DNA from: Takakia lepidozioides
Lineage: Eukaryota > Plantae > Bryophyta
DNA: 64,000 nt
Direction of reading: 5' to 3'
Assembly: GCA_030704615.1 (NCBI GenBank)
Contig: CM060731.1
Span: 5,704,001-5,768,000, forward strand
A program made the position numbers and the translations under genes. Below, in pieces: positions 1-35,665 of this stretch. Every line of letters begins with the position of its first letter. Positions within the stretch are counted from its first letter, which is position 1. The notes under the pieces were generated by a model that was not told the DNA's origin, did not search any database, and saw nothing but the letters and a program-made list of their open reading frames with translations.

Positions 1-3000
1 GCGCGTTGCGGTGTTTCTCCCCAACTTGCTTCCACTTTAAATCCAGAGGTCACAGGAACGAGACCGATTGGACAGGCACAACTCATCAACCATTTCGAGC
101 TCAGGAGAAGGTTCCAAACTCCACATTTAAGTGTGCGCATTGCAAAGAACCACCACACTGCATGTCTGTTTGTAATGCCAAGCAGTTCTCTGTGTTGCAC
201 CGTTTCCCTGACCTCACCCGAGCTTGCATACACGTTGGTTCCCATTGTCACAAATTGGCGAGGGGGAACTCGCGGGAGGCTGCCCACGAAGCAGAGCAGC
301 TCGTTCAGAAGGAGGTTAAGTTGAGACCGGGTGCCAAACCCAAACAGATACAGCTCCAAGCCGCCCATAAGATGGCATTGGCCAGAATTATGTCGGAAGA
401 CAGTTCCGATAGAGTTCCTCTCGATGAGAAGGAAATGGAGGCATTGCTGGAGTCGGTGTCCCACGTATGTTCACCGAATGTCCGAAACCACAGAAAATTG
501 GTCGTGGCTCGGATATGCATTCCATTCTGGAGGTGAAGCGACGATGTGGATATGACTACATTCATGGAAGTAGGTTTCCAGGACAAGGGACTGAGGCAGA
601 TCGTTGTTTCGTATTCAAAATGTCCACGTGTGGACCTGGCAGCGGCGTCGAACTGGTCGACAGGATGACGAGTGGGGACTTGTCAAACAGTTGGGTCATG
701 TTCGACCATATCAAGCGAATTACAAATCACCAGTGGGTGACAATGGGTGCACATGTCTACGACACCCACTGCAGGATGCTAATGACAATTGTTATTTGTG
801 AGATGAAAGGAGAGAACACACAATCGGAGATGCTTCTTTGGCAGGGAATAAACGAACAGATGGCCAAGGCGGGATTGCCCTCTCCCAATTTCCGTGGTTT
901 CATGGCGGACAACGCATAAGCAAATTGGGCTGCCATCCGAAGGGTGTACGGGCAAGACCCCAATGTTCCCATGGAAGGCAAGGAGAGATCTTGTGGGTTC
1001 TATTTTCTGCAGAGCCTTTCGCAGTACACAACCCGGTTCGTGGCGCCAGATTTCAGAGAGGAGCACCGTTCCATGTGCCTTGCGTGGAAGCGCGCTCCCA
1101 CCTTGGATGATGCAGAGACACAATTTGCATGTATACGGGCTTGGTGGACATCATCAGGTGCTGTAAGGAAATCAGACGAGGGAGCAATGGTCAGTTGGCT
1201 AGCATGGTGGCATTATCGTTTCCTCCAGTTTGGCGACTATATGCGGGAGGTGAGTTGCACGAATTCGCGTCCCGTTGAATATTATTCTTGGCCATATTTG
1301 TAACTTGCTTGTAACCTCAACATGTGCTTGTGCAGGAAATGTGTCTCGACTCCGACACCGACATGCCCACGACAAACATGGCCGAATCAGTGCACTCTTC
1401 CTGGCGTGCCTCCTCTGCGGCACATCTGGTGGACATCCTCACTGCCACAACGGAGGACATTGTGAGGTCAATTATGCAGCAAAGCAGGTACAACGAGTTC
1501 TTGAAAGGGAAACAGTGGGGCTTGGGGCCGGACAGGCAGGAAATGCTGATGCGGACTGCCTCTAGATCGAAGAATCCTCGGAAGTGGGCGGCGGCCTTGC
1601 GAGAGGGCCTTCGGGACACGCCATTGCTGCGAAGAGGCCAACATTTGGAAGGAGATGTTCATACCCGTCCAGTGAGACGAAGACTTGACGAGGCACCTGG
1701 CGGAGAAGAGGATTCATGGCGAGCTGACAAGAATATTCGCACGCTCCCTCGTGGTCCGGTGATGTTGCCCGAGGAGGTCTCGTCGAGCACCGCAAGTCCT
1801 GCACGTTCAAGATCGCCATCTCCTTTGAGCACAGGGCGCGTGCCCCGACAACATAACGAGCCATCTGTAGTAAAGCAGTACAACATTCCCATTGTGGAGA
1901 CAAGAGTGTCGGAGTCACAGTGTAGAATTGCGAGGACATTGCCGGCATTTCGAGGGAAGTGCTGCGCCATCCAGGTGGATACGAGAGCACGCTGTGGTGA
2001 GATAATTCGGAGGAACCCACACAGTGCTGTACCTGCACCTTGTTTCAGCGACATATTTTTGACTCCCACATTTGCTCACGCCACAACGCAGACATTTTGG
2101 TTCTGTAGGCACGACATAATGACTTGTGTATTTGGCAAGCCCAAGTACGGGATTCAGGGAATGCCGGAGCCTCCGGGCGTCTGGCCTGTTGCACCGGGTT
2201 GCAGCCTCTCTCAGAATGAGGCGGATGCTCTATCTACAGCAGGATTTCGAATGGTGCAACGCACAGACATCCCAACCCACGCATTTCCGGTTCCTGAGAC
2301 CCAGCCATTGCAGACTGCTCGGTCCAGTAGAGACGGATTGGACAATTCTGCACATCCCACAATGCGATTCGGAAGAGTGAAGAGACGACACCCTCCCAAC
2401 AAGTTGAATGAGACTCGGATTGCCAATGCTCTTGGGATGGCTTGCACTATTCAGAGCTCCGTGGACGTACCCCCACTCGGCCTTGGGCGTGTGTATCGGA
2501 TGGCAACGGCCGGCTCGGCTGTACGCGACGATGTATACACAATTACGATTGGAGTGGAGCCGACTCGCAATTGTACGGACTTCTCGTTGATGGAAGTAAA
2601 GAAGGGTTCGAAGTATTATCCGTGCAAGCATCTGTATTGCATTTACCTGAAGAGGTTGAGGATGAACGTGACTATTGATGACTTTATTCATGCACCGGCG
2701 TTGAGCGTGAATGAGCTGCACAAACTCCTCCTTAGGGATTCCAGAAATCATTGATGGGGCAAAGGGAATCCTCCATATGGATATTTTCAATTGCATTTTG
2801 TTGTATCAGATTTTTTTTTGCAGTGTAATGAAATGCACCCCAAAACTCTTGGAATGAGGCAATATTCCATTCAAACTGAGATCCAATAGAAGCAGTTGTG
2901 GGGCCATTTCTGGAAAAATGACACCGAATTTCTCTTTTTGGGGCCGAAAACTGGTAAGTCCCAACATGCAGTGGTACCTGTGTCTGGGAAAATGGCGCCG

Positions 3001-3419
3001 AATTTCTCTTTTTTGGGCCGAAAACTGGCTAAGTCCCAACATGCACTGGTACCGTGTTTGGAAAAATGACGCCGAATTTCTCTTTTTTGGGCCGAAAACT
3101 GGCTAAGTCCCAACATGCACTGGTACAGTGTCTGGAAAAATGGCGCCGAATTTCCCTATTTTGCGCCGAAAACTGGCTAAGTCCGAACATGCACTGGAAA
3201 AATGGCGCCGAATTACCTGTCATGAGGGGACCTATAGCCGCGGAATTCGGCACCATTTTTTGCCAGAGAGACCTATTACCGCGAAATACGTCGCCGTTTT
3301 TTCAGGTTACGGACCCTATTACCGCGAAATTCGGCGCCATATTTCCACATGTCGCTGGGAATTGGCATGAGATTAAGACGAAATATCGTGAGCACAACTA
3401 TCAAAACTACAATTTTCCC
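1..3419 (+). mobile_element. Mutator-like (MULE) DNA transposon, right part, with decayed SWIM-type transposase; left end lies outside the window
   Basis: ORF pieces 6-536, 467-919, 944-1249 and 1337-2754 join across a frameshift (~470-500), a TAA at 917-919 and a GT-AG intron (~1250-1336). Motifs: WVMFDH, GFMADNA, CGFY (CxxH-like), TTNMAES, and C-terminal SWIM-like xNCTDF...YPCKHLY. Subterminal tandem repeats follow. Right end tentatively at ...caattttccc (3419). Confidence 0.75.
2911..3215 (+). repeat. ~74-bp tandem repeat, about 4 copies (subterminal array of the MULE)
   Basis: Unit tggaaaaatggcgccgaatttctcttttttgggccgaaaactggctaagtcccaacatgcactggtac..; units start near 2911, 2985, 3059, 3133, with a partial copy at 3195. 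Confidence 0.9.
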
Positions 3420-3721
3420 TTCAAGGGGCCAAATAATATATTTGTTTTTCCTGACACATTGCATTAAATTAATGTTTTTAATGTTTTTTTAATGTTTTTT
3501 ATTTTCGAAATTTGTACTTCTGCTCATGAAAACCGATTGTCTTACTACTCCGCTCATGCCGCTCATGCTCATGAAATAGCTAACCTCCCCACCACTGCCC
3601 TGGCCACTCCCTACTGGAGGCGCGACATTGACTTACCAAAGAGGTTATCTACGCCGCTACACACAATCGCTCGATCCGAGCTCTGGCAGATGAAGCTGAT
3701 TAGCGCACAATGCAACGATAG

Positions 3722-3800
3722 AACTAGGGCTTCGCGTTGCTCCGCACTACTAGCGACGAATTCTGAGAACTACGTTCAATTTGCACAAAAAGGGGTGGAC
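3722..3800 (-). repeat. Element tail (putative 3' end), copy 1
   Basis: ~77 bp near-identical to the reverse complement of 9791-9871; also matches 49382-49455. Confidence 0.9.
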
Positions 3801-3824
3801 CATAGGTAGACACCTAAGACTTTC

Positions 3825-4060
3825 AAAAAGAAAAAAATGGAAAAAAAAGGAAAAAACTGGAAGCTACTTCTCACACATCAGGCCCTTCATTATAGTGAGG
3901 GGAAAATAACCTCTTTGATAGATAAATTTTCCTTAATGTCCAATGAATCTACAGAGCCTACTGCTCAACACAGCCCATCGAGAGGCCAATGGTCGGTTTG
4001 AAGGCACATGTTGAAGGATTGAACCCAGGATCACTACCTGAGCACAAGGCTCAAGGGACC
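3825..4060 (-). mobile_element. Degenerate SINE-like repeat inside the element
   Basis: Shares the caggccc...agtgag.ggaaaat.acctcttt core with the SINE at 13517-13720; box-B-like gggttcaatcc on the minus strand near 4016-4027. Confidence 0.45.
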
Positions 4061-4274
4061 CGGGGGGTTGGGGAGAAGATCATACCACACCCCACAAGGT
4101 TGATTTTTCTTTATATATATACGGCAACTCGTATTAAATCAAGGGACATAACCTTGGGAGAACTTTAAGGCCTTACCAGAAGGTGGGTAACATACCCTCG
4201 GGAAAGATATTTTTTAGTCTGGTAGGTGAAACAGCTGTCTGGAGTGTTTTCTGGCTGTTGTATTTACCCTGAGT

Positions 4275-7200
4275 TTACCAATAGTCCCCACAAGAACACA
4301 CCCCATTGTTGAAGTGATGAAAGCAGATGGCATCCCTTGCAATAATTTCTCATGCAACAATTTTGGATATCAAGGCAGTGTGGCAGTCCCTACATACACG
4401 TAGGTTTTTAGTGATGCGGATAGGGTCCCAGGGGGTGTGCTAATGAGCCCAAAAGCAATGGCCTCCTTAATCTGCCAAGTCAATCTAGCATAGATCTCCT
4501 CTGCTCGTGGGTGAGATCTATCTCCAACGGCAGATGTATACACCCTGTTTTCCGCCTCAATCCAAGTGTGGCCTGGTTCCTTTTTCACCTCTGGCGTCCA
4601 TTGCTTTTCTCACTTATCACACTCCTGCACTTGCAATACATACTGACATCCCGAGACCAACATCTGACTCAAATTCAGCTTTGATGATGCTGGCATGGAG
4701 CTGCTTGCCCCGTTCTAAAGCCTCCGGGCCAGCACAAGCGTTGAGGACACTAATAAAGGTGACAATATCTGCCTTCATGCCTTCTCTTTGCATGCGCTGA
4801 AAGAGTTTAAAAGCCTCCTCACCATGACCATGCTGAGCAGATCCTGCAATCATAGCAGTCCATGAGACCCCATCTCGCTTGGGCATTGTGTCAAATACTT
4901 GGGTGGCATCCGTCAAACCCTCACACCTGTAATACATGCTAACAAGGGCAGTCCCCACATGGACATCCCCCTCAAGTCCAGCCTCAATGCACGCACATCT
5001 TGCATACATGTCCACCAGGGCAGTGTTCAGGATGACATCTGGTACAATTCCAGCTTTGACGATGTCACCATGGACCTCTTTCCCCTTTTCCAGAGCTCCC
5101 AGGCTTGCACACACATTGCAAACAAAAACAAACGTTATGTGGTTGGGCTTCAACCCTTTGCACATCATTTGCTCATAGGTCTCCAAAGCCTCCATCCCGT
5201 GCATACATGTCCACCAGGGCAGTGTTCAGGATGACATCTGGTACAATTCCAGCTTTGACGATGTCACCATGGACCTCTTTCCCCTTTTCCAGAGCTCCCA
5301 GGCTTGCACACGCATTGCAAGCAAAAACAAACGTTATGTGGTTGGGCTTCACCCCTTCGCACATCATTTGCTCATAGGTCTCCAAAGCCTCCATCCCGCA
5401 CCCTTGCTGTGCATAGCCTGCAATCATCGCACTCCACGACACCACATCTCGTTCAGCCATACTTTCGAGCACTCCCTTTGGATCCTCGATGCACGCACAT
5501 TTGACATACATTTCCACCAGGGCAGTGTTCAGAGTCACATCTGGTAATCTGACAGGCATTCACTTTTTGCTTTGGTTGTCCCACTATTGACTGGGGTCAG
5601 AGAAGTATTCATTCCACAGCTTCTCCTCATCTCTGTTACCTGTTTTTGGATAGTTTCCTGTTGTCACATTGGCAGTATCATGTCAAAGTCACTACAAACT
5701 AGATTCACTCAACCAGCTAACTCGCAGAATTCAACATGGAAATTTAGGGCCGATTCTGATTAGAGGGAAAAACAGGGCGAAATGTGTTGAAGAAGGTGCC
5801 TTCATTAGCAGTGCCTTCATGAAGCCTTAACCCCATGGGAACTCTGGAAATCTTCATATTTGAAAAATGGGATACATTAGATGTCTTAATATTTTTACTA
5901 GAATGCAGAGCCTCGGGCACCTGACTATCAGTGGGAACAGTCGCTACAAAACTACTAAGTTAATGCCCGCAACAGTTGAACACCATACAAATTGAGCAAC
6001 TTAGGATAATGTGAGTGTGCACCTGCTTTCCAGCTTCTAGACTTCCATCTTGATGCACTTAAGCAAGAGACAGACATACGCATCTCAATCTGCTGAAATG
6101 CCTCCTTGGGTTTAAAGTCTGTAGAGCCTCTGTCAATCTGCCTGCTGGGTATTGTCCAGAATCACATTGGTACAATTCCAGCTTTGGCGATGCAACCATG
6201 CGCCTCTTTTCCTTTTTCCAGGGCTGCCACCTGCTTGCACACGCACTGCAAACGCACACAAACATGATGTGGTCGGGCTTCACCCTTCCCCCATCATTTG
6301 CTCAGAGGTCTCCAAAGCCTCCATCCCGCGCCTCTGATGTGCATACCCTGCAAGCATCGCATTCCACGACACCACATCTCGTTCAGCCATAGTGTTGAAC
6401 ACTCCTTTCGCATCCTCAATGCTCCCACATTTGGCATACCTGTCCACCAGAGCAGTGTTCAGTGTTCCCTGCTCCTTCAGCTCCCGCGCCCTTGCTGTGC
6501 ATATCCTGCAATCAAAGCACTCCACGACACCATATCTGGTTCAACCATACTGTCGAACACTCCCTTCATACATGTCCACGAGGGTATTGTTCAGAATGAC
6601 ATTTGGTACAATTGCAGCTCTGACAATGTCGCCATGGACCTCTTTGCCCTTTTCCAGAGCTGCCAGGCTTGTATACGAATTTGCAAATGCACACAAACGT
6701 GATGTGGTTGGGCTTCACCCCTTCGCGCAACATTTGCTCATAGGTCTCCAAAGCATTAATCCTACCACACCCATGCTTGGTAAATCCTGCCAACATTATA
6801 TTCCACGTGATCAAAGATCGTTGAAGCATTCTGTTGAACACTTGGTGAGCATCCATGATGCTCCCGCAGTTAACATACATGTTGACAAGGGTGTTGAGTA
6901 GAAAAACATTTGGCGGGAATCCACTTTGGATAATGTGAGTGTGCACCTGCTTTAGAGTCTGTAGAGCCTCTGTCAGTCTGCCTGCCGCACAAAGTATCTT
7001 CACATGCCCAGAAGTGCCAGAAGAGGCATTGTGGACTCCCTCTCTTGATCCTCTTTCAGAAGCTGTGGTCATGGTTTAGGTGCCTGATTCCATGAACTGT
7101 GCCGCTGCAGCTGCTGCCTTTAGTTGACCATCTACCCATGCAGGTTTATTGTAGCTATTGATCCACATGGAATCATAGGTCATCTGGAGCTTGAAGTCCG

Positions 7201-7480
7201 TCCCTCTTGGATGAATCTGTCCACCCACACACTATCCCTGCTCCTTCAGCTATCCATGCCTCTGCACAAATCATACATACATCCTTGCCTTGCTGCTATC
7301 AGCTGACAATGACAGCCTAGATTTGTTCTAGGAAACACCCAACTCAACTTATCACACTAGTTCCTATGCTCAATTGCATCTGCTACTCTCTCCAACAAGC
7401 ATTCACCTTTTTGCCTTGATTGTCCCACCATTGACTGGGGTCAGAAAAGTATTCAATCCACAGCTTCTCCTCGTCTCTGT
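4275..7480 (-). pseudogene. Captured, decayed OSB-PDF-motif + PLS-PPR + E/E+/DYW gene with internal duplications
   Basis: PDF motif (DEEKLWIEYFSDPSQWWDNQGKK | intron 7406-7217 | IHPRGTDFKLQMTYDSMWINSYNKPAWV) runs in frame into AGRLTEALQTLKQVHTHIIQSG. Then P/L/S repeats (NTALVDMYAKCGSIEDA, RDVVSWNAM), KKEPGHTWIE...GDRSHP, and KNLRVCRDCH...[15 protein letters not shown]-stop (4275-4277). Stops, frameshifts and a 199-bp tandem duplication (5001-5398) are present. Confidence 0.85.
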
Positions 7481-8267
7481 TACCTGTTTCTGGATACTTC
7501 CCTGTTGTCACATTGGCAGTATCATGTCAAAGTCACTCCAAACTATCAAAGGTTCACTCAACCAGCTAACTTGCAGAATTCAACATGAAAATTTAGGGCC
7601 GATTCTGATAAGAGGGAAAACAGGGTGAAATGTGTTGAAGAAGGTGCCTTCATTAGCAGCGCCTGAATTTATCAATTGTGCCGCTGCTGCTGCGGCTTCC
7701 AGTTGACCATCTACCCATGCAGGTTTCTTGTACCTATCCTTCCACAGGGAATCATAGGTAATCTGCCGTCATATACCCATCACAGGTCCAATCCAAACAG
7801 CAGCCCTAACAGCCACTTTTCGCAAGACCAGACATTTCAAAGACTGCCCTACATAATAAGCTTACACATATACCACTTTTAGCAGCTCAATGAGAATCCT
7901 GTCAGCTTTGGAAGAACACAGAAGAAAAAGGAGCGAGAATAACCTCGGCAGGGGTCTGCTCAGCGCGAAGGCGTCTGCCATCGAAAAGGAAGGCGATCAA
8001 CTGACCGACGGTCGCAGTATGCATGCATCAGCTTTCGAAGTGTGGCTGTGGTCTTAATCCTGAAAAAAACCTCCCCGCCATCCTACACATTGCAGCATCT
8101 CCGGCCATCCGTTACTAGACCCATACAAATTCTCCTTCACAACACCTTCTTCTCCAACCACCCGAAATTACCACAATTCTCGCAGCTTTCTTCACGAGGA
8201 GAATCTACTGAGAGTCCCTGGCATTTGATGTAACCAAATATATTTGTGAACCACATAAGAGGTGTAC

Positions 8268-8478
8268 CTGCGGACCCAGCCATTGTGGGGAAGTACGCAG
8301 CGCATAACGAGCCTGCTTGGGTTTCTTCAACGGGTCAGTCTCGTGCAATGCAGCAGCTGCCTTCATGTAAGAGCTTCCATCAAGAATCCACTCCATGATG
8401 ACTGCTGCCTCCATCTGACCTGGGTGGTGCTTCAGCTTGTGAGTTAATGATCAGCAAACTCTGGCTTTCCTTGCATCA
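8268..8478 (-). pseudogene. PAL: Captured phenylalanine ammonia-lyase fragment (3' half of an exon)
   Basis: [39 protein letters not shown]...[19 protein letters not shown], followed by a GT donor at 8267. Confidence 0.9.
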
Positions 8479-8533
8479 CCCTCTCATTGACTGCATTAAT
8501 GAATTTGAAGTGTCAAAGATCACAAACACTAAC

Positions 8534-8653
8534 CTTGATGAGGCCAGCAAGGCAGTGGAGGTCACTATCTAAGGGCACAATGCCCTTGTTGAGTTGGTCC
8601 CTCACATGTTCTTTATGGCTGTTTTCTGCATTAATCCTGAAGATGCCCTCAGC
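8534..8653 (-). pseudogene. RopGAP: Captured RopGAP (RhoGAP domain) exon
   Basis: AEGIFRINAENSHKEHVRDQLNKGIVPLDSDLHCLAGLIK, bounded by AG and GT splice sites. Confidence 0.85.
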
Positions 8654-9790
8654 CTGCCCAGAGCATCTATGGAGTAAATGTTGGCCATGGCACCAACAGT
8701 TGACTGTTTGATATAGTTGGTAAAGTTGGTTCACCCAGGATGAGGTGAACAACTACCACAACAGTCAATGTTCGTGTCAATGATCACTACATAGGTAACC
8801 TGAGGAGCTATAGTGGAGAAGTGGGTGTGAGGATTAGTTGGGGGTAAGTCTGCAACGAGCTTGGGACAAATGAACCCTGATTAGTGTGTATGGCCAGACT
8901 GAGTGGATCTTCTTAACTGGCCCAGTACAGTTTCATCCATGTGCTCTTTGGTATACTCTGACGGCCCAATGATCTATACCCCCCTTCCCCCCCCCCAAGC
9001 AATCTGCATCGGATCCAGTTACAGAGAAACCATCCCTGAAAGCACATAATTGTCAAGCACCTCACGGGAAAAACAATTTTGACAGCAAGAGCACTTCAGC
9101 TATTACAGCCATCCGATGATGTGACTTGAAACTACTACTATTATGGTCTGTGAGTTCACAATGGTGACTGTCCCCAGTCATCACAAATAGAGAGATTTAT
9201 CCCAATTGTTCACTTTTCATAATTGAACTTCCTCATTCTTTCAAGGAGTAATATCATCATTCAATTCACTAAGCTCTCGAGTGTCATGTTACAATTGCTG
9301 AGAGGCACCAGTGCCGTGTCCAATTGATTGAATCCAACGCTTCTCAACTTTGCATAACCTTCTTACTACAGATCAAGTACCTAATCGATGATGATCCATG
9401 CTTCAAGAATAATTAGGTGAAGGTCTTTCATTACTTGCTGATGTATTCATGAGCATACTCCTCTGCAGCCTTATTCTTAAATTGTCTTTGTCACTATTCT
9501 GTGTTATTCTGACTTTTGTATCTGAAATTTCTCACTAAGGTTGATCTTTGCTTCTATGCTACAGGACGTTTGGTTTCAACATTGATGCGTTGAGGGAATG
9601 GTTTTGCAGAAATCGTACAGGTGTCAAGTCAGGTCAGGTTGTGGTAAGAAGCTTCCAAGCAAATATACATCTTGTAGTATGTGTCTTGTATTATGCTTAA
9701 ATTGTTTGTCAGGGGCAAATCATATGAGAGCAAAATTCTTCTTGCGCGAAACAATGAAACATAGGATCTCTGTATGTAACATTGTGGGGA

Positions 9791-9990
9791 TGATCCACCC
9801 CTTTTTGTGCAAATTGAACGTAGTTCTCAGAATTCGTCGCTAGTAGTGCGGAGCAACGTGAAGCCCTAGTTGTAGCGACGACCGAAGGTCGGAAGCTAGT
9901 TTAGCGTAGAGCAGGAATAGGGTGCCATAGTGCCACATCATCCTCGTCGTCAATTTCTTTGGACCCTGCCCGAAATGCCCGAAATCACCG
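9791..9990 (+). repeat. Tail-to-head junction of two element copies (tail ends 9871, head starts 9873)
   Basis: ...gaagccctagtt g tagcgacgaccgaaggtcggaagctagt...; left half is the reverse complement of 3722-3800, right half the reverse complement of about 13225-13367. Confidence 0.85.
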
Positions 9991-10244
9991 AGCTTGTCCC
10001 TCACGCGCTGCCGCTTCTTTCTCGCTCGCTGTCTCTGTGCGCGTCTGCCTTTGTGCGCTAGGTGTGGTTGCTGGAATCATGGCTGGTGTGGAGGATAGCA
10101 CCAACAATGCAGGAGAAATTCACAACGGGGAGGAGAAGAAGCCTTTTGGAGGGGGGGAGGTCACATTAATCTGAAAGTGAAGGGTCAAGTATAGAAGCCC
10201 GTGGCATTTTTGTATGGGTTGTTTCCCATTTTTGTCAAATGCAG

Positions 10245-10467
10245 GGCTTCTAACTGCTAGGCCCAACCCAAAGCTGTCACTGAGGACGGAGAGGAGATTT
10301 CAGCTGTACAAGCTCTCAAGCTCGCCGGAGTTGAGAAGCCCTTTGAGCTGCAGCCAAAAGAGGGCCTCACCCTTGTTAATGGGATGACAGTGGGGTCAGG
10401 CTTGGCATCAACGGTCTGTTATGATGGAAATGTGTTAGCCCTACTTGCTGAGGTTTTCTCAACCCTT
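10245..10467 (+). pseudogene. PAL: Captured PAL fragment (5' half of the same exon as 8268-8478)
   Basis: After a tgcag acceptor: [73 protein letters not shown]. Confidence 0.9.
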
Positions 10468-10574
10468 AAAGAGGGAAAATAATAAATTCACACCCTTAGT
10501 TCAGGCACATGGTACTCCAAGTCAAAAATCCTAAAGTAGGCTGAACCAATATGTCGATATGGGATTTTTTGCAG

Positions 10575-10710
10575 GCATGGTTTCGAGAGCTTCCTCAAGG
10601 AATATTGGATGCCCCAGAGCAGGTCTTATCATGCCAAATAGAGGAGGAGAGTGTGGCTCTCGTGAAGCTGCTGCCTCCCACACAAGCTGCATTGCTAGAC
10701 TGGGCTGTCA
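10575..10710 (+). pseudogene. RopGAP: Captured RopGAP exon fragment (the exon following 8534-8653)
   Basis: After a ttttgcag acceptor: AWFRELPQGILDAPEQVLSCQIEEESVALVKLLPPTQAALLDWAV. Confidence 0.85.
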
Positions 10711-11900
10711 TCCAAGAGGGCCGGGTTTCAAACACAAGATTACTTTTGATTCCCTATGGATCAATAGCTACAAGAAATCTCTGTGGGTAGATGGTAAACT
10801 GGAAACAACAGCGGCTGCAGCGCAATTGATAGAACAAGACGCTGCTAATGAAGGTACATTCTTCAACACATTTCAGCGTGCTTTTCCCCGTAATCAAAGT
10901 TGGCCCAAAATTATCATGTTGAATTCTGCAAGTTAGCTCGTTGGTGGATCTATGGTGGTTTTGGAGTGATTTTGAAATGTTACTGCCACTGTGGCAACAT
11001 GAAAGTTTAGAAAAACAGATAGCAGAGACGAGGAGAAGCTCTGGAATGAATATGTTTCCGACCCCAGTCAATGGTGGAACAATCCAGGCAAAAAGGTGAA
11101 CGCCTGTTGGAAGCAGACGCAGGTCATCATAGGAACTAGTGTGATAAGTAGGGTTGGGGTGTTTGCTGGAACATTCTAGGCTGTCATTGTGAGCTGCTAG
11201 CAGCAAGACAATGATGCATGCATGATTTGTGCAGAGACATGGATAGCTGAAGGAGCAAGGATAGAGTGTGGGTCCAGATTCATCCAAAGGGCCGGATTTC
11301 AAGCTCCAGATTACCTATGATTCCCTGTGGAAGGATAGCTACAAGAAACTTGCATGGGTAGATGGTCAACTGGAAGCCGCAGCAGCAGCGACACAATTGA
11401 TAAAATCAGGCACTGCTACTCAAAGCACCTTCTTCAACACATTTCACCCGTTTTCTCCTCTTATCAGAAGATGGTTGAACATGATGTGGTATCCTAGAGT
11501 GCGATGATTGCAGGATATGCCCAACATGGGTGTGGGTCGGATGCTTTGGAGACCTATGTGTAAATGATGCAAGAGGGAGTGAAGCCCGACCAGGTCATTT
11601 TCAACCCTCTCTCCTTCCACATGCCCCTCCATAACCAGGATGTTCCAGCTAGTGTCCAAAAACAGCTTCAGTACAAGTATGACAATATCAGGGAGGCAGG
11701 TAACAGAGACGAGGAGAAGTTGTGGAATGAATACTTTTTCTGACCCCAGATAATGGTGGGACAATCAAGGCAAAAAGGTGAATGCCTGTTGGATTACAAA
11801 GAGTAGCAGATGCAATTGAACACATGAACTAGTGTGATAAGTTGAGTTGGGTGTTTCCTAGAAAAATCTAGGTTGTCATTGTCAGCTGCTAGCAGCAAGG
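10708..11900 (+). pseudogene. Repeated OSB-PDF-motif exon/intron fragments plus a short PPR relic
   Basis: HPRGPGFKHKITFDSLWINSYKK, DEEKLWNEYVSDPSQWWNN and GPDFKLQITYDSLWKDSYKKLAWV; inverted homologue of 7100-7760. Confidence 0.75.
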
Positions 11901-12216
11901 AAACCCTCACATGACTATATAGAAGATACTTGGATGCACTCCATATTGGTGCTCTCCTTTTGGATTGTCACGAAGAATGACAGAAAATATCTTTCTGAAA
12001 CCAACCAAACTACAGAAGCATTTGAAAAACTAGAAATTCATATCTTGCGCTTTAATCCCTCACAATCAACAATTAAGGAAACTAAGGGAACAGACTTTCT
12101 TAGCACGACCATTGGCATTGTTCCATGCACCCATGCACAAGACACCAAAACACTGTAGACCTAATTTTCCTAGTCGTAGAGAAGAGGCAAGACGAAAGAA
12201 ATGGAGGGGAGAAAAC

Positions 12217-12299
12217 CTGGCACTGGGCACCCGCCGTGGAATCTCAACCTCAAATTCAGCAGGCAGGCTAAGAAAACCATTGTAACAATCGAAAGCCAG
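12217..12299 (-). pseudogene. RopGAP: Captured RopGAP CRIB-region fragment
   Basis: LAFDCYNGFLSLPAEFEVEIPRRVPSA then a GT donor; resembles the plant RopGAP post-CRIB motif FDRFNGFLGLPVEFEPEVPRRxPSAS. Confidence 0.75.
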
Positions 12300-12770
12300 G
12301 GCATCGGAAACGTATTTATTCCAAAGCTTCTCCTCGTCTCTGTTATCTGTTTTCCGATACTTTCCTGTTGCCACATTGGCAGTAACATGTCAACATCACT
12401 CCAACCACCATAGATCCACCAACGAGCTAACTTGCAGAATTCAAAATGAAAATTTAGGGACGACTCTGATAACAGGGAAAAACAGGCTGAAATGTGTTTA
12501 AGAAGGTGCCTTCATGCATTCAATTGTGCTGCTGCCGCTGCTTTTTCCAGTTGACCATCTACCCACATGTCCAGGTCAGGGCAGTGTCCAGAATGACATT
12601 TGGTACAATTCCAACTTTGATGATGTCACCATGCACCTCTTTGCCCTTTTCCAGGGCTGCCAGGCTTGCACAAGCATTGCCAACGTACACAAACGTGATG
12701 TGGTTGCATTTCACCCCTTCCCTCATCATTTTCTCATAGGTCTCCAAGGCCTCCATCCCGCGCCCCTACT
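12300..12770 (-). pseudogene. PPR and PDF-motif fragments
   Basis: MEALETYEKMMREGVKCNHITFVYVGNACASLAALEKGKEVH (12570-12756) and DEEKLWNKYVSD (12305-12340); homologous to parts of 5000-5820. Confidence 0.8.
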
Positions 12771-13224
12771 GTGACTTCAAACCAACTTTGAAATGAAGGC
12801 CATTGAAAGCAGAGTCAAACAGTTTTGTTCAAATTTCAACTTTTGTTTTCTCACTTCAATGTGGGTTCTATTCACAAGACCTCAACTTCAGTTAATACCT
12901 TCTCCATGACAGATCCCCTCCACTACACTTCTCCATAGTGTTCACCATCCAGTTGTTTTCTGTTTCCGTAACACTCAAATTCTTGAACTCACAACCCTTA
13001 CTGGCTCACCCAATGTCAAAAGCCACATTAAGACATTTCTATGCATGATCCTTCATCTGCCAAGATGATCTCTTCAACTCAGCATGGATGTCCTCATTTC
13101 GTTGAGAGCTTGCAGCTTGCAAGGTGAACTATGGCGGAAAACGCAGAGCTTCTGCAGTTCAAGAAATCAAGATCCGGGCATTGCGGGCAGTTCCGAAAAA
13201 GTTGGCGCGGCGATTTCTATTGGC

Positions 13225-13367
13225 ATATTTCGGGCAGGCAGTCCGGGCAGATTCCAAAGAATTTGACGACGAAACGTGGCGGCGATGATGTGGCGATGAA
13301 AACGTGGCACTATGGCACCCTATTCCTGTTCTACGCTAAACTAGCTTCCGACATTCGGTTGTCGCTA
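13225..13367 (-). repeat. Element head (putative 5' end)
   Basis: Minus strand reads ttc-tagcgacaaccgaatgtcggaagctagtttagcgtagaacaggaatagggtgccatagtgccac, matching 9873-9935. Confidence 0.9.
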
Positions 13368-13516
13368 GAATCATAAATGTACCATGATACTACATCTGGG
13401 CTTCCTAGACCTCACAAAACGAATGGATGCTACCGGAATGGATGAGATCATGTTCCCATCACAACATATGCCACTTGGTCAACACCGAGTTTGGCAACGC
13501 GGAATGCTCCTAAGGT

Positions 13517-13720
13517 ATTATTTATTTATTTATTTATTTTATAAAGGGAAACACCTGGGAGCGACACTCACAAATCAGGCCCCTTAGTAGTGAGAGGAGA
13601 AAATGACCTCTTTCATTTATGCGCCATGGAGGGCGAATGAGTGGGACACCGCCCGGGAAACATACCACACCCGTCGGTAGCAAGATTTGACCCCAAATCT
13701 GGGTGGCACTCTGACTGTTG
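13517..13720 (-). mobile_element. tRNA-derived SINE
   Basis: Minus strand: acagtcagagtgccac...gggtcaaatc (box B)...ggggcctgatttgtgagtgtcgctcccaggtgtttccc, then a (TAAA)n tail; same family as 33411 and 35430. Confidence 0.7.
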
Positions 13721-13859
13721 GTGGTATTCTGCTCTTCAATAAGGTCACGATAAATACAAAGGAAATATTACGGCAAAAAAAAAACTCTCCCAGATTTGGT
13801 AGGTATATCCAGGTGCTGTTTTAGGGTGGGAAAAGTTAACTTTATTTCCTGCCCCACAC

Positions 13860-14145
13860 CAGTGTTTTTATTTCTGGCGAAATTTTGCACTTTTTCGACC
13901 TCCAAAAAAACAATGGAATATTCTGTCTTAAATTCCCTATTTCCTCATGGATAAAATCGCCAAAATTCTCTAAAAAAAATATAAATCTTGGATGAATTCG
14001 CCTAATATGGATTAGATACATGGATGAAAGTGTAGAGGAGGATGATTCTGTCCAAATTTCAGTGGATGAACAGAAAATATGGCTATTTCCTGCAAAACTC
14101 AGTAGCCACTCCTGTTCTTTTCCAAATTTGAAAAAAAAAACACTG
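13860..14145. mobile_element. hAT-type MITE
   Basis: TIR CAGTGTTTTT...AAAAACACTG with a perfect 8-bp TSD CCCCACAC (13852-13859 and 14146-14153). Confidence 0.85.
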
Positions 14146-18600: not shown

Positions 18601-21600
18601 ACATTCATTGGGATGGCTGCAGAATTTTTTGTTTACAACCAAGGATGAGCATGCACAGTTGAAGGCCATTGATTTTGGACTTTCGGATTTCATCAAACCA
18701 GGTGTGTATCATGAAGCTGTGTTCTAGTGCTCTGTCCAGTTTTGTATGCTATGAATTGCCAGTCATCTTACTTGGTTGCACAGTGGTACCTCGCCACGCC
18801 ATCAAGCAGAGAGACTCTTCCTATGGCAATCATGTATGGTGAAATCCTTTTCACTCATGCTAATGATGGTAATTACTTGTTTTTTGCTAAGACAATCCAC
18901 AATTGAACTTATGAAGCATGTTTATGCTGACATAATGATGCAAAGTTCTGGTTGCATTGTGCATGTAACTGTCGATTGTGACTCTGACACTGCCTAGGCA
19001 GCTCGCGAGTTGCCGTACCTAGTGTACATTCTTTTGCAACTGGTTAAAGCATGTTTCCAATTTCATTGACCTCAATTTATGCTAAATAGTCTGTGGATGC
19101 TGGACTATATTGCTACAATCGAACATGGCAATGTCATTCCCCTCTGAGCATTGCTTTCATGCCATGATGTCAACCAGACATTGAATTGAGGGTGCAGATG
19201 AGAGGCTTAATGACATTGTGGGGAGTGCGTACTACGTGGCCCCTGAGGTGCTGCACCGGTCATATTCCATGGAAGCAGATGTGTGGAGCATTGGTGTGAT
19301 AACCTACATTTTGCTTTGCGGTAGCCGCCCCTTCTGGGCCCGCACAGAGTCAGGCATCTTCCGGGCTGTGCTGCGTGCTGACCCTAGTTTTGAAGAAGTC
19401 CCGTGGCCATCGGTCTCCCCAGAGGCCAAGGACTTTGTCAAACGACTCCTGAACAAGGACCTCCGCCGGCGCATGACTGCTGCCCAGGCACTCAGTATGT
19501 TCCTTTTTGGCATAGTGCCCATTGAGTGTTATGTGCCCCCCTTCAATGAGAGGAACTGGGTTACCGTCATCATCACAATTTTTATGGCCCACTAAATACT
19601 GGGTATGCAATAGCCTAAAGGGCGGATCCCCTGTCGGATACCAACCCTCTGAGAGTCAGTTGTGGGTTTCAACCAACGAATGTTTATGTAGCTCAATTTA
19701 AACTTCCCGTAGAAGTTTGCACTGCTCAATTGATGTTGATACGAGCTTGTACATCAACGATGTGATCTCTGAAATCTGATTGGTATCAGCTATGACAACA
19801 GGGAATTAACTCATTGTTTGATGGACATGCTGGTATCGACCTCATAATTGAAAGGTGGTGGGTCTTTCCAGCACTGCTGCTTTAGACCTCTAGCTGGGGG
19901 GAGGTACATTCGTTGACCATGTGTTTGGGGGTTGCAGCGCATCCATGGATTCGAAGCAATCAGAAGATACCACTCGATATATTGGTTTTCAAACTCGTCC
20001 GTGCCTATCTTCGGTCATCCCCCATGAAGAAGTCTGCCCTGAAGGTTAGGCTCAAATGTGAGGCCGTGGGACTATGCAAGACTCGTGAGCATTTGGCCGA
20101 GTCATTGACTTGGGAGCACATTGGTCAGAGTAGCTGAGCTGATTGACCTGTTTGTAGCTTAGCCATTTACTCTTCAGCTTCTTTGCTTAGATGTGTGAAA
20201 TTGGAAGATCATGTATGCTTGATAAGAGGATACAACAAATGTGTAGATTCATGTAAGGTCCAGACCAGACTTTTCTTTCTTGTTGGGTTTGTATTGTAGT
20301 TTTCTTGTCCTAGGCTCTCATCTGCAGGTTTTTGAGGGTCAACTACGGTGGAAGTTTGATTGTTTTGCTGGTGAACTCGAATACACAGGCCTTGAAACAG
20401 GAGAGGAAAATCTTTGGGGATTTAAAAATGGCTGGGTTGCATTGCAGGCACTATCAAAAACTTTGACAGAGGATGAGTTGTATTACCTCCGGGAGCAATT
20501 TATGCTGCTGGAACCCAATAGGAGTGGTCGTGTTGCTTTTGAAAACTTCAGAACGGTCAGTTTGTATGCCAATTCTAAGGCAGACCTTTGAAAGCATTTG
20601 ATGAAGTTTGTCTGCTTTTAATGCTCTTTGATTGGAATAACACATGTATGAACATGTAATGTAGAGTCTGCAGGAATCATCTCAACCTTTTGATGTCATC
20701 TTGACTTGACATGCAGAGGTATTGTACTGTTTTTGGTGCTTTGGAGCAGGCATTGGTAAAGAACGCAACAGAAGCGATGAAGGAGTCTCGGGTTTTTGAG
20801 ATTTTATCCTCGGTAAATTGCTGAGCTGTGTGATCTATGATGAGCAGTGTTCATTGGGTGAACTCAATATAGCACATTCTTGTTGTGAAAGTTTTTTTCA
20901 GAACTTCTCACAGGAGCTAGAAAAGAAAGGAAGACCAAGGAGTAGTCTCAAGAGCTCCAGCATGCCTGCTGTAGACTCACTATTTTTCTTTTTTCCTCAG
21001 TAGGTTAGCTAGAGAAGATAGCATCTCAGATTGCAGGTCCACGATGCTAGAGCCTGCACTGATCTCACTACATCCAAGAGGCGGTTGCTTCATCCTTGAA
21101 AACCTGCCTGAAAATTATTTCTGAGGAACATGAGGTTGTTTGCTTGCCAACAGATGGATATTCTGTCATTCAAAAAGATGGACTTTCCAGAGTTCTGTGC
21201 AGCTGGCATAAGTGTGCATCAGCTGGAGGGCACAGATCGGTGGGAGCATCATGCCCGATCTGCCTATGAATTGTTTGAAAAGGAGGGTAACCGTGTTATC
21301 ACTGTGGAGGAACTCGCACGCGTATGCTCTCTCTCTTTAACTCATGGCTGATAAAGCCATATTGCTTGCCGTATGCTTTGTTTTGGCTCTTCAATGCGTT
21401 GTGCTGACTAGAATCACTCAACTGAGAGCATGTTGGGAAGCTAATGTTGCATAATTAGCCACCCCGCAAGTGATGCTCAGCATTCCAGGTAAACAAGGGC
21501 ATTTATGTAGGAGTGTGGGTTTTCATTGTCACCAGCATGTTAAATCTGATGAGGGGCCTCATAGGCTGTGGGCAAGTGCAGGAGGTCGGACTAGCACCTA

Positions 21601-25248: not shown

Positions 25249-26727
25249 TTACATAGGGACAAAACTTGCGTTGCTCTGGTCGGTAAAGGCACAGGGCACT
25301 CGAATCACAGCACAGTTGTAACAAAATCCATTCCCCCGGATCTCTATCACGCGTCGCCAGCTGACAGCATCCGTCACCGGGTTCACCAGGCAAGCATCAA
25401 TAAGGGCACCCCCTGCCGGATTTGAACCACCAATAACCCACAACTCCCCCTCAACTGCCTTAAATCCAAGGCCCCAGCCAGTTGAGCGTGGGTTGACGAA
25501 GGGCAACCCACAAAGAATTGACCAAGTGTTATCCTGCTTGTTATACTTCTTCAACTCATTGTTGAAGGCATCGAGGGCGTAGAGCTGGTTGTCAACCACC
25601 GCTACTAGAGGGGGGGATGGGTGGGGTGAGGGTGTGTGTATCCAACCAGGCCACATATCTGGGACTAGCCTCCAAGAGTCAGATGCAGGGTCATATATTT
25701 CCCCGGAGGTGAGGGGCGCTCGATTTGGAGAGATGCCTCCTATCACGCAGAAACAGCCGTCCATGATAAATCCTGAGCACTCCTTGCGCGGCCGATTCAT
25801 GTCAGCTATATTCTGCCACCTGTTCACAACTTTCACAGATTCATTACAGTATCCACTGAAATGCCCAAAAGAAAGAGACGGTAGGTCTTTGAAGCATGCA
25901 ATCCGGGATGTCTGCCAGTGGTAGTGACCCCATACTCACCCCCAAGTCACCTAAGCATTCAAGCTTTCCTAAGCTCGGAGACATATCTGATGAGGTTGAA
26001 CAGCGCTGGCAGTATTTCGCTTCGCTCACCCAATTCTGCCCTTAACTCTCAACGACTAAAACGCTGAATTCACGACCTAATGACAGAATCTGAAAAATGC
26101 TTCCAGTGCTGGTGTTTGTTACCTGTCAGCCAGCGAGTCGAAACACTCGGCCGAGGTCAAGCCGCGCCGTCCATCGTACTCCGACCCTCCTGCCACAAAT
26201 GCGACATTTCCCATAGTAGCCGATGCAAAGAGACACCTGCGTGTCTGCATTGGCGGTGCCACAGACCACTCAGAGGTGGAAATGTCGAGACTCCAAATCA
26301 AGGGCTCAATCCTGCGTGTTTCCTCATTCACGTGGAGTCCCACAACCATGAGCTTGAGTCCTGCTCCGAAGCACTCACGATCTCCATTCGTGAAAGCATA
26401 ATCAGCAGGCATATCAGGAACTGAATGCCACCTTGTCAAGATGGGGTCGAGCTTGTGCCACTTGGGTGCGCCACTCAGGATCATGTATGGCCAGTCCTCA
26501 CAAAGGCCAAGCTCAGCCCGCTTTGCCCGAAAGTCTGCACTACCCACCTCCGCTCTCCAGGCCTTCGATACAAGTCGGCAGCGTCCGTGTTGCGCTCGTG
26601 GGACGCGTATCAGGATGAGTAATGCGATGTCATTGGGTAGGCCGGTAATGAGCGTTCGAGACTGGGCTTGGTTCGAAGACTCTCCCCTTTCTGGTCGGCT
26701 TTGTACTGCGAGCTGGTTCTGAGCCAT
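25249..26727 (-). CDS. F-box/kelch-repeat protein, 2 coding exons
   Basis: F-box LITGLPNDIALLILIRVP; kelch repeats (PPMQTRRCLFASA...FVAGG; ADMNRPRKECSG...CVIGG; LWVIGG; CYNCAV). Exons 26727-26123 and 25819-25249, GT-AG. Confidence 0.92.
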
Positions 26728-29700
26728 GGAACAGACTGTACCCTAATCTTCAGAGTCACCCACGTCTGGCTTGTGCTCGATCTTCGATCAAGACAGGCTC
26801 CTTGCTTTTCTAATACTTCACAGTCGGGCCTGAAATCCCAGCAATTCGGACTTGGTGGGGGATTGCTGGGCATTCGTCAATCCAGGTGGGTCCTTGACAC
26901 TGTTGTTCCAGTTCTGAGCTTCGAATTGTGTGGGGAATGCCGTCCAGAGAATGAGAAAAATGATGTGAAGCTCAATCTCATATTCGAAATCGTGGCTCAG
27001 TAGCTTGAGTTGAAGCCGGACTTGCGTCTGGATTACGCCAGAGCTCACACCACAACATCTGCTGACATCTCCCCACCTGTGACAATCTCACGTCAGTTCC
27101 TACAGTCTGCCATGGCTGCTCTATCACTTCAGGATCGCTAGTGATCTCATTCACGCTCATCTGTCCTCGAAATGCAAGCAGTTTGACCCCCCAGGTAAGG
27201 TAAGATTGAAGTTCAAAGACTTATGTCACGCTGTTCCTCTAGGTATTCCACCAAAAATTCAGACCTGAAAAAGTGCTCAAGAGCTCGAAACTACTGTGTC
27301 ATTATCCGCAGAAGGCATGATCAACTCAATTTCAGTAGCATGTCAAAAAACAAGGGTAACATTGTGTCGACTGGGTAGTTAGGTGGTCAGACAGGGAATT
27401 CGTGAACTGTGAAATGTAGGTCCAGCAGAAGGGCATTCGTGAAAGTCTCATGAGAGGTGTATTAGAGTGACAGACAGTGAGATAGGCCCTTGAACTTGAG
27501 ACCTGCTTCAGTTAGAAAATCACACCTACCTCCCTGGTACTCAAAGCGAGACAGCCACATTCACGAAATTTTAATTTAGCGACTTCGAAACAGGCGTAAG
27601 CAATGCATTACAAGCAGATTCTCCAGAGAGCTAGCTACTTCTGAGTTGCTGCAGCCCTTTCTGTGTCCACTTAAGCACCAGAACCTGGGCTGGATGAAGA
27701 GATTACACCTAGATGGGGTCAACAAGCAAACTGTTATACTGGCCAGCGCCCACCAACTTCAAGATTACGACACATTGGGCAATGTATATATCCAGATTTA
27801 AGGTTCTTAAGACCTCCTGATCCTTGCGCTCCCACACCAATTTTTAGGAGCTGCAGGGATGCTCTAGAGGCCTCAAGACGAGTCAGCCATAAACTTCTTC
27901 TTTTACGAGACACGAAATTTCCAACAGTAACTTGAAGCCAACCTGACCCAAAAGAGCCCGTGCCTTAATCTCCCAATGTCTCCCCCGCTGTAGACTCCGA
28001 GAGAGGCGAAGAATGACGTGTGAAGTAAAGATTGAGGACCCGCTGAGGATCCTTCAAGAAGCACTGAATTTCCTGCCCGCTGTACACACCCAATCCCACT
28101 TCCCCTTTGTAAGCACACCACTCACTGGACCAAGTTCAATCACCTCGGTCCTACTGCTACACCACCCGAACGCATCAAAAATTCCGCTCAGGAAAGAAAC
28201 ACATTCATATCCCTGGAATGCACATTCAACCCACACCACTGTCAGAGAATAATTACAGCCAGCACTAGACTGATGCACCCTTCCTCCAACATGTTCTACA
28301 ACAAAACGCTTTGACAGCCAGCCGTCGCTCTCCCCTCCGATTCCTCCCTCTCTCACCCATTCGAACTTCAACCTCACCCCCGACTCCTCTCACAACCTAG
28401 CCAGCACTCAAATCGCGCCAACACCAAATTCCGCTCTCTAATTTCAACCTCGACTACGCACAGCTGCAGACTGTATCTTACCGCACACTCTCCACTCCTC
28501 TGCAACTGCCCCCCGCAACCTCCACCACACTACTCCCACTCCTCCCCACTCGAAGAGTCTAGCTCCGCAGCAGCACACACAGAGAGCGCAGGCCGAGAGG
28601 CCCTCCCTCTCTCTCTCTCACTCTCACAGTCTCTCGCGCTCTCTCTCACTCGCAGACGCTAGTCACACACTCACACACAGGCTGGGGTTGCACAAGAGAA
28701 GGATGAGTAGCAGCAGGCGACGCCCCCCTTTTTAGCCTCTCACGAGCGGGGACAGTTGCCAGTCCCGGTCGGGATTCCACGGCCCCGCCCGCCCTTCCTT
28801 TCTCGGCCCGGCCCGGGCCCCCCCCGTCGCGCGCGTACCGCGCTGCGCCAGCCCACCCTTTACTCCCCCGTTACCGCCCGTCAGACCGCGCACCCACCCA
28901 GGGTTCAACTCCCCGCGCGCGCGTCCCCTCCCTGGTTTCCCGTAATTAATCGGGGTTCCAACAACATAACGGAAGGCGGGTCCTCGCATCGGGGCCCACC
29001 GGGCGACGCTGACCCGTGTGGTCGCACGCAGCCGCTGCCAAAGCGGCGCCCACGCTGGCAGCCTGCGCGACTTACTAGTCACTTACTCGTCACTTACTAC
29101 TGCCTTACTAGTGAGCCGTGCACCGCGGGCACGCCATCGTCGGCCGGAAGTGGTGAGCCGGTTAGCGGCCACGTATAAAGTGCAGTATACGCCACCCAGT
29201 ACACGTGGCTGCGGTGGCTATACCGTGTGGCGATACCCTCTTCTTTGGTTTAAAAAACAGAGAACAATTATGTTGGTGGGGTGGGTGATGCGACCCTGCC
29301 AGCACTTTGCCTTATATTAAAACCCTCTCACATCCTGCAGACGGTGAGAGCGACTAGCGAACCCCTCTGCTCCATGCGTTGTTTAGGTCACCAGTTTTTC
29401 GTCTATTTGTTGGTACACCCGGTTGACTCCGAACTGCAAAACTGCATGGACCCACGTCTCAGCATCTTAATAATAAATTTGCCACTAACTTGCATTTTCC
29501 GGGTGGCTGTGATTTGGTGGTGCACTCGACCGAACCGGACGACCCATGGATGTTGTAAATACATCACAACTGTTCAAGCGGCCAACCCCCCTCTTGCGTG
29601 TGCCGGTGATGGGATGGAGGCCTGTTCGCATTTTTCTAAGTGTGTGACATGACTTGCCCATGGTGACTCGGCCGCGCTGCTTACAAAAAAAACCCATTTT

Positions 29701-33410: not shown

Positions 33411-33585
33411 ACAGTCAGTAGCTCAGTTGGTAAAGTGCTCTTCCCCCTTTCTCTGCGCAGTGTCGCATCGGAAAGCCTTACGGCGAAGTTACTGAGAGGT
33501 TATTTTCTCCTCTCACTACTAAGGAAGGGGCCTGATTTGTGAGCTGTCGCTCCCAGGTGTTTCCCTTTGAAAACAAATAAAAATT
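33411..33585 (+). mobile_element. tRNA-derived SINE (internally deleted)
   Basis: Box A tagctcagttggtaaag; conserved 3' body ggggcctgatttgtgagctgtcgctcccaggtgtttccc; A-rich tail. Confidence 0.7.
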
Positions 33586-35429: not shown

Positions 35430-35665
35430 CAGTCAGTAGTAGCGCACTGAGTGCCACTCAGATGATTCTGGGGTCAAATCCTGCTGCCTTGACTGGTGTG
35501 GCATGTTCTTCTACCCCTTCCCGTGGATGCGAAAGCCTTCGAGGTTACTGTGAAAGAGGGTATTTTCTCTCCTCTCACTATAATTAAGGGGGCCTGATTT
35601 GTGAGCTGTCACTCCCAGGTGTTTCCCTTGAAAAAGAAAAAAAAGAAAAGAAAAAGAAAAGAAAA
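35430..35665 (+). mobile_element. tRNA-derived SINE
   Basis: acagtcagtag head, box B gggtcaaatcc, same 3' body as 33411, (AAAAG)n tail. Confidence 0.7.

Follow-up and report, generated by a model that had tools for sequence, protein, structure and literature searches.

Two tandem gene-carrying units with probable Helitron2/Helentron-type ends, disguised by an inversion, in Takakia lepidozioides

Positions 3722-13369 of a 64,000-nucleotide stretch of the Takakia lepidozioides genome (GenBank assembly GCA_030704615.1, contig CM060731.1, positions 5,704,001 to 5,768,000 of the forward strand; this whole stretch is called the window) hold pieces of several host genes between two unlike end motifs. 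The question raised by this locus is what kind of element the ends belong to and which end is the partner of which, as the present layout suggests one pairing and the captured genes another. A first-pass annotation had read the region as a head-to-tail dimer of a gene-capturing family with ends like those of Helentron/Helitron2 elements. We found that 3722-13369 probably represents two non-autonomous members of one very high-copy family with Helitron2/Helentron-type ends, rearranged afterwards by an inversion.

The two distinct end motifs of that annotation, here called head (5' end) and tail (3' end), are both present. The word TAGCGACGA has three exact copies in the window, at 3751 (+), 9834 (-), and 9873 (+), and one copy with a single mismatch at 13359 (-). 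End A (AACTAGGGCTTCGCGTTGCTCCGCACTACTAGCGACGAATTC...), the tail, lies at 3722-3803 and as its reverse complement at 9790-9871; end B (TAGCGACGACCGAAGGTCGGAAGCTAG...), the head, lies at 9873-9946 and as its reverse complement at 13294-13367. The present order is reverse-complemented tail, tail, head, and reverse-complemented head, with the two middle ends in contact, and each motif forms an inverted pair with its own kind. A repeat finder returned these pairs as 88 nt at 95% identity for tail with tail and 77 nt at 90% for head with head. Symmetric terminal inverted repeats (TIRs) of this kind, together with target-site duplications (TSDs), were the pattern that had been named in advance as contradicting the Helentron/Helitron2 assignment. 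The pairs exist locally, but no TSD accompanies them, and the cargo indicates that the pairing is secondary. The absence of a TSD had been reported before, and we likewise detected no direct repeats of at least 6 nt flanking the ends under any reading of the element ends.

The cargo derives from PAL, a RhoGAP-domain (RopGAP) gene, a SUMO-like gene, and a PPR-E+-DYW gene, and a GT...AG intron is retained; these findings bear out the proposal of DNA-level capture from at least three host genes with intron borders kept. The upstream PAL piece, 10261-10467 (+), matched positions 153-213 of the Pfam Lyase_aromatic profile, the downstream piece, 8208-8450 (-), matched positions 231-285, and the 36 nt at 8451-8486 (-) encode the PAL residues between the two profile matches. 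Joining 10469 to 8486 restores a single PAL frame, ...EVFSTL/NERVMQGKPEF... (here and below a slash within a sequence marks a join or break). One RopGAP piece, 8516-8752 (-), aligned with residues 214-263 of the RhoGAP-domain protein P0015 and ends in ...LHCLAGLIK, followed by the GT start of an intron. The other, 10545-10748 (+), aligned with residues 261-310 and has the ...AG end of an intron directly before AWFRELP. The Pfam RhoGAP match to the upstream piece was weak and Pfam missed the downstream piece; the RopGAP identity was settled by a search of protein representatives and by pairwise alignment to P0015. PDB sequence searches with both RopGAP pieces returned chance matches only. The SUMO-like gene is divided in the same manner, with a first exon at 10090-10183 (+) and later exons at 8082-7905 (-); these were read by eye, and Pfam backs one exon only (Rad60-SLD). 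Exons and pieces were searched singly, and no joined or spliced protein model was used in the searches.

One inversion of 8487-10469 accounts for all of the reciprocal splits in this cargo. Reinverting that segment restores the PAL and RopGAP fragments, with profile and residue numbering contiguous across both breaks, and yields two tandem head-to-tail units on the minus strand of the window. Since the cargo is collinear only when a head is paired with a tail, the original partner of each head was a tail in direct orientation. The inversion across the tandem junction has produced the present look of two elements with symmetric inverted repeats. The head-to-tail dimer of the first-pass annotation is thus incorrect for the DNA as it now stands and correct only after the inversion, which that annotation omits, is undone. 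The break in the PAL exon reads ...CCCTTAA/TGAGAGGG and the break in the RopGAP intron reads ...GCAGTCAA/AGAGGGAAAA. The short words AATGAGAG and AA are common to both breaks, and AGAGGG lies nearby. Breaks at short shared words form a pattern that fits break repair and not transposase action at element ends. The features of the two units are as follows.

8487-10469, no strand assigned: inverted segment, 1,983 bp, spanning the tail/head junction; breaks read directly.
13294-13369, minus strand: head (5' end) of unit 1, TCTAGCGACAACCGAATGTCGG...; host flank ends ...ATGAT at 13370; inverted partner of 9871-9946.
10470-13293, minus strand: 5' body of unit 1, with a stretch of no named gene, PPR repeat pieces, repeats of a gene without a Pfam match, and the downstream RopGAP exon.
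10575-10715, antisense to unit 1: downstream RopGAP exon, from the alignment to P0015.
8487-9789, plus strand: 3' body of unit 1, inside the inverted segment; upstream RopGAP exon, then low-copy sequence.
~8540-8665, window minus strand: upstream RopGAP exon with the GT intron start.
9790-9870, plus strand: tail (3' end) of unit 1, ...TTCGTCGCTAGTAGTGCGGAGCAACGTGAAGCCCTAGT; 97.6% identical to the tail at 3722-3803.
9871-9946, plus strand: head of unit 2, T-G(family consensus C)-TAGCGACGACCGAAGGTCGGAAGCTAG...; 5' arm 9872-9881, hairpin 9879-9891.
9947-10469, plus strand: 5' body of unit 2, with the SUMO-like 5' region and first exon (~10090-10183, by reading) and the upstream PAL piece, 10261-10469.
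3804-8486, minus strand: rest of the unit 2 body, all cargo in the sense of the unit; Pfam matches.
8486-8208, minus strand: downstream PAL piece of unit 2.
8082-7905, minus strand: SUMO-like exons of unit 2.
~7770-7080, minus strand: pieces of a gene without a Pfam match, in unit 2.
7072-4617, minus strand: PPR repeats of unit 2 (Pfam PPR families).
4609-4353, minus strand: E+ motif and DYW deaminase remnants of unit 2 (Pfam Eplus_motif, DYW_deaminase).
3722-3803, minus strand: tail of unit 2; reverse complement of the 3' arm at 3750-3759; the last T is 3723 or 3722, ambiguous.
49382-50418, minus strand: third family member, with a tail at 49382-49458 in a different flank.

Unit 1 consists of the reverse complement of 10470-13369 followed by 8487-9870 (4.28 kb), and unit 2 of 9871-10469 followed by the reverse complement of 3722-8486 (5.36 kb). 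The un-inverted sequences were built in silico solely for comparison of the units with each other. In this restored state, a head of 64 nt (95%) and a tail of 82 nt (97.6%) occur in both units and in the same order. The interiors differ, and the common part consists of rearranged PPR-type pieces only, including the PPR-like repeats in the 5' body of unit 1. Cargo variation between copies, which had been suggested as a check on the family, is therefore seen in units 1 and 2, where the ends are shared and the cargo is not. The cargo of unit 2 has a single orientation, that of the unit, and comprises SUMO exon 1, the PAL piece, SUMO exons 2-3, the gene without a Pfam match, PPR repeats, E+, and DYW remnants, with ~550 nt between the DYW remnants and the tail. 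Unit 1 carries the antisense RopGAP piece and PPR pieces. Pfam searches of the repeated cargo pieces 7079-7768 and 10559-10936 gave no match. The third member, at 49382, has 60 nt in common with the tail region of unit 1 and shares 760 nt (96%) with the 3' part of unit 2 that bears DYW; no head belonging to this copy was found in the window. Directly past its similarity to unit 2, an open reading frame (ORF) at 51626-52504 carries Tc5-type DNA-binding and DDE_1 endonuclease domains (pogo-like transposase).

Each unit end has its own anatomy. The 5' arm of an asymmetric inverted repeat is CTAGCGACGA, 10 nt long and 1 nt from the 5' end. The 3' arm is TCGTCGCTAG at 9834-9843, 26-27 nt from the end of the tail (9869/9870); the 3722 copy is alike. 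The complement motif that had been placed ~29 bp before the tail end is thus present, slightly closer to it. By our own arithmetic, the chance of a 10-nt match at just these positions is ~3 in 100,000. The head of unit 2 can fold as CGACC-GAA-GGTCG at 9879-9891, with a 5-bp stem and a GAA loop overlapping the 5' arm. In the head of unit 1 (13369 copy), a 5-bp stem of CGACA with TGTCG lies in another register and is kept despite two changes; both folds had been described previously and were found again here. The tail of unit 1 ends ...GAAGCCCTAGT. In an alignment of the tail/head junction with both solitary tails and the one solitary head, similarity among tails persisted through CCCTAGT(T) and was then lost, and similarity among heads began at T(C/G)TAGCGAC. 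T/T was invariant at 4 of the 4 aligned boundaries. Tail and head touch at 9870/9871 with no host base between the units, so that the abutment reported earlier was upheld. These boundaries are most simply read as those of an element T-CTAG...CTAG-T that has gone into a T/T site, the two units abutting directly.

Two further observations concern the ends. Beyond the tail of unit 2, the flank at 3714-3721 reads TCTATCGT on the unit strand, compared to TCTAGCGA at the head start, with 6 of 8 letters equal; this flank and the terminal T of the tail (3722) match the consensus junction ...CCCTAGT/TCTA over its first four letters. A third unit, truncated by a neighboring element, may have left this flank as its stump; alternatively, a target preference may be at work. 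Secondly, the 49382 tail carries a variant 3' arm, TTGTCGCTAG (49410-49419), which complements the variant 5' arm CTAGCGACAA in the head of unit 1 (13360-13369). With one case of each, this hints at subfamilies with co-varying arms.

By definition, a Helitron2 element begins with T and has an asymmetric terminal inverted repeat whose arms measure 8-15 bp; the 5' arm takes part in a 5' hairpin and lies within 0-2 bp of its end, and the 3' arm, at 20-30 bp from the other end, directly precedes a 3' hairpin (Bao and Jurka 2013, PMC3627910). The HLE2 clade (Helitron2 and Helentrons) inserts between T and T, and HLE1 (canonical Helitrons) inserts between A and T (HELIANO, PMC11417382). At our locus the length of the inverted repeat (10), the positions of the 5' arm and the 3' arm, the 5' hairpin, and T/T without duplication all agree with Helitron2/HLE2, and the 5' T does too. 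Judged from its letters, the structure fits Helitron2/HLE2 in five of six testable features.

To determine how common the ends are, contigs of four public runs were mapped onto 8000-13900 (5,901 letters); three runs represent one sample of the same organism, and one run is a plant metagenome. For run X1, error-free contigs put the single-copy depth at ~40-70 (~60). The bin containing the termini, 9773-9969, had a depth of ~174,000, or ~2,800 times single-copy, compared to depths of 233 and 1,691 (4 and 27 times) in the bins beside it. These data indicate thousands of copies of the termini and just a few of the insides. The alternative that the motifs are unique to this locus, which had been named as a second way in which the assignment could fail, does not hold. 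Forty-two contigs spanned the junction, reading ...CCCTAGT/TCTAGCG..., and 98% of a depth of ~28,000 had C at 9872, where the window has G. The junction ...GAAGCCCTAGT/TCTAGCGACGA... is therefore itself common, and the consensus head begins TC; this tail-T/TC-head junction had ~450 times single-copy depth. The PPR-like cargo reached a depth of ~1.7 million, or ~27,000 times single-copy. Across 10758-12924, which holds PPR-like and neighboring cargo, summed contig depth was 100,000-1.7 million versus ~60 for single copy, which for the organism means copies in the thousands to tens of thousands, with a likeness of at least 85%. Scans of metagenome contigs with the head and with the tail gave no match, nor did a protein search with the open frame across the head. 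Contigs encoding RopGAP-like matches came from other species and were without the termini.

Un-inverted joins were also found among these contigs. The PAL join, 10466 to 8480 on opposite strands, had a depth of ~330 (~5 times single-copy), and its contigs have ~9 letters between the two sides, the number required by the restored PAL frame. The RopGAP join was represented by one 488-nt contig, consisting of the reverse complement of 8657-8481, one letter, and 10468-10739, at a depth of 121 (~2 times single-copy); this contig is the un-inverted RopGAP exon-intron-exon form. With a divergence of 2.5-4% from the window on one side, the un-inverted contigs appear to be sister copies or parent genes elsewhere in the genome.

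Several points weigh against our assignment. No Rep/helicase domain was found in the 38 long ORFs of the window, as had been noted before, and none was linked to these ends. The data show how the ends are built, that units with common ends differ in cargo, that a segment is inverted, how many copies there are, and how frequent the tail-head junction is; the mechanism is deduced from end anatomy. The choice between Helentron and Helitron2, and rolling-circle mobility itself, depend on a Rep/helicase partner, and none was found in the window. The 5' hairpins are modest (z scores of -1.6 and -1.9 for the two heads versus shuffled sequence). The three tails fold no better than shuffles (z scores of +0.8, +0.8, and -0.3), which includes the weak tail stem proposed earlier (z +0.8). 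The motif GCGAAGC, a stable DNA mini-hairpin, is the sole hairpin-like feature in the tail. The boundaries and T/T are based on five ends (three tails and two heads) at two loci, and no empty insertion site was seen. Because no listed contig crosses 8486/8487 or 10469/10470, the two inverted joins, the assembly is the source for the inversion. Finally, the ends resemble those of Helitron1 too, with a 5' TC and a 3' CTAG.

This resemblance could mean that the family is canonical Helitron1 and has its 10-nt inverted repeat by chance. In favor are a consensus TC at the 5' end, a 3' CTAG with T after it, and the standing of Helitron1 as the classic gene-capturing group of plants. However, the base preceding the head is T rather than A in both heads, and the 16-20-nt hairpin ~11 nt from the 3' end is missing. 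The arms of the inverted repeat, moreover, lie exactly at the places defined for Helitron2, and a 5' hairpin is a Helitron2 trait. We consider a Helitron1 identity unlikely.

The inversion could instead be an assembly error, the true locus being a plain head-to-tail dimer. Among the contigs listed, only un-inverted joins occur, and none crosses 8486/8487 or 10469/10470. In contrast, those un-inverted contigs, at 2.5-4% difference on one side, look paralogous, the window's version of 10530-10639 is present at single-copy depth, and the breaks fall at short microhomology, outside the long inverted repeats by which assemblers are misled. An assembly error at this locus is quite unlikely.

It could also be that the family is an undescribed mobile or recombining unit in which the tail-head junction is a functional site, such as the circle junction of a recombinase, and in which the likeness to Helitron2 is convergent. 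The abundance of the junction in the genome, the lack of a Rep/helicase linked to the ends, and the unconvincing 3' hairpin would all suit such a unit. However, tails and heads also occur solitary beside unrelated flanks (49382, 13369, and 3722), the end anatomy agrees with the published definition point by point, and no recombinase gene is associated; we regard this scenario as very unlikely. Two cut-and-paste elements side by side, E1 (3722-9871) and E2 (9873-13367), each Pack-MULE- or hAT-like with its own TIRs, were our initial reading, favored by the inverted pairs (88 nt, 95%; 77 nt, 90%) precisely at their bounds and by ends that both begin like hAT ends (TAG.G), but this reading was abandoned after cargo mapping and comparison with the public contigs and is hardly credible: the pairs are due to the inversion, a TSD fits at no offset, the PAL, RopGAP, and SUMO fragments are split reciprocally and are collinear only if an A end pairs with a B end, and independent inverted-repeat elements would not produce an A-end/B-end junction at ~450 times single-copy depth.

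For two tandem units with Helitron2/Helentron-type ends, the following course of events can be proposed. A Rep/helicase element at another place in the genome would mobilize the family in trans by rolling-circle transposition. Each unit starts as T-CTAGCGACGA... with the 5' hairpin and finishes as ...TCGTCGCTAG-(26 nt)-T, with T flanking both sides, and pairing of the 5' and 3' inverted-repeat arms would mark the unit end. The mosaic of host gene pieces was copied into the units as DNA, introns included. Tandems could arise from read-through or from insertion into the T/T that is present at every element boundary. The two units would first have lain head to tail, and later repair of double-strand breaks would have inverted 1,983 bp across their junction.

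The locus provides an internally controlled proof that the ends of a unit are unlike, as the captured gene pieces are collinear only in the head-tail pairing. It also serves as a warning that a small inversion over a tandem junction can disguise elements of rolling-circle type as TIR elements. A non-autonomous Helitron2/Helentron-type family with thousands of copies that carries chimeric SUMO/PAL/PPR-DYW cargo in one orientation is a plausible engine of exon shuffling and of the amplification of PPR-DYW fragments in a land plant. A bolder and more tentative possibility is that this family is a main vehicle that copied and reshuffled PPR-E-DYW modules of RNA-editing factors to tens of thousands of genome fragments. 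We raise it because unit 2 and the 49382 copy both have the 3' end of a DYW gene beside the tail and because the PPR-like cargo has ~27,000 times single-copy depth. If true, the raw material for growth of the editing-factor gene family would have come largely from a Helitron2/Helentron-type transposon.

The rest of the window contains other genes and repeats. Long ORFs lie at 1-2800 (for example 1315-2751, 479 amino acids) and had no Pfam match at E 0.001-0.01; they are followed by tandem repeats of 74 bp (2925-3221) and ~41 bp (3231-3347). A short dispersed repeat that follows a (TTTA)n run occurs at 13520-13711, 33495-33581, 35449-35648, and 3845-3914 and had ~1,100 times single-copy depth. 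Apparent host genes are a protein kinase exon at 19185-19592, an F-box/Kelch gene at 25252-26742, a glutathione S-transferase at 44165-45043, and a thiamine-phosphate synthase domain at 63263-63778, for which the closest public match was 79% identical. The minus strand of 54172-57733 encodes a retrotransposon pol with aspartyl protease, dUTPase domain, reverse transcriptase, and RNase H. ARAGORN called no tRNA in the window.

The family is a new one of an already known kind of element and not a new kind. The earlier picture of a Helentron/Helitron2-type gene-capturing family stands with regard to structure, tandem arrangement, and DNA-level cargo; however, its novelty was overstated. To place such elements mainly outside land plants is out of date: Helitron-5_SMo was listed as a Helitron2 member (Bao and Jurka 2013, PMC3627910), and HLE2 was found in 13 land-plant species from six classes (HELIANO 2024, PMC11417382). 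Our literature search found no paper linking Helitron-type elements with PPR-DYW capture, and a search for the terminal words returned unrelated primers only.

Compared to known systems, the locus shares with Helitron2 (Helitron-1_CRe and Helitron-5_SMo; Bao and Jurka 2013, PMC3627910) the asymmetric arms, the hairpin at the 5' arm, the 5' T, and a T-rich target without duplication; it differs in its unconvincing 3' hairpin, its TC...CTAG ends as in Helitron1, and its cargo mosaic of several genes. Helentrons and the HINE/DINE-1 elements (Thomas et al. 2014, PMC4067079) likewise have subterminal inverted repeats, terminal Ts within the element, and TT insertion, and HINE/DINE-1 also resembles our family in tandem arrangements and the very high copy number of non-autonomous members. 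However, HINEs are short, are mostly without gene cargo, and have inverted repeats 38-60 bp from the 3' end, and Helentron status requires an endonuclease domain in the partner (PMC4067079). Tandem insertions are on record for Helitrons and Helentron-derived elements. The land-plant HLE2 elements reported with HELIANO (PMC11417382; HelenSM92 of Sphagnum magellanicum) are similar in host, short terminal inverted repeats, and TT sites but are autonomous copies that encode Rep/helicase; they were compared by description. Helitron1 elements of maize and other plants also carry chimeric cargo from several genes, with introns kept and mostly in the element's sense, and have a 5' TC and a 3' CTAG; in contrast, their insertion site lies between A and T, their 3' hairpin is clear, and they have neither a terminal inverted repeat nor a 5' hairpin. 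Pack-MULEs are non-autonomous DNA elements with fragments of several host genes as well, and the locus now looks like one with long TIRs. Their inverted repeats, however, are truly symmetric and come with 9-10-bp duplications, whereas at this locus there is no duplication and the symmetry comes from the inversion.

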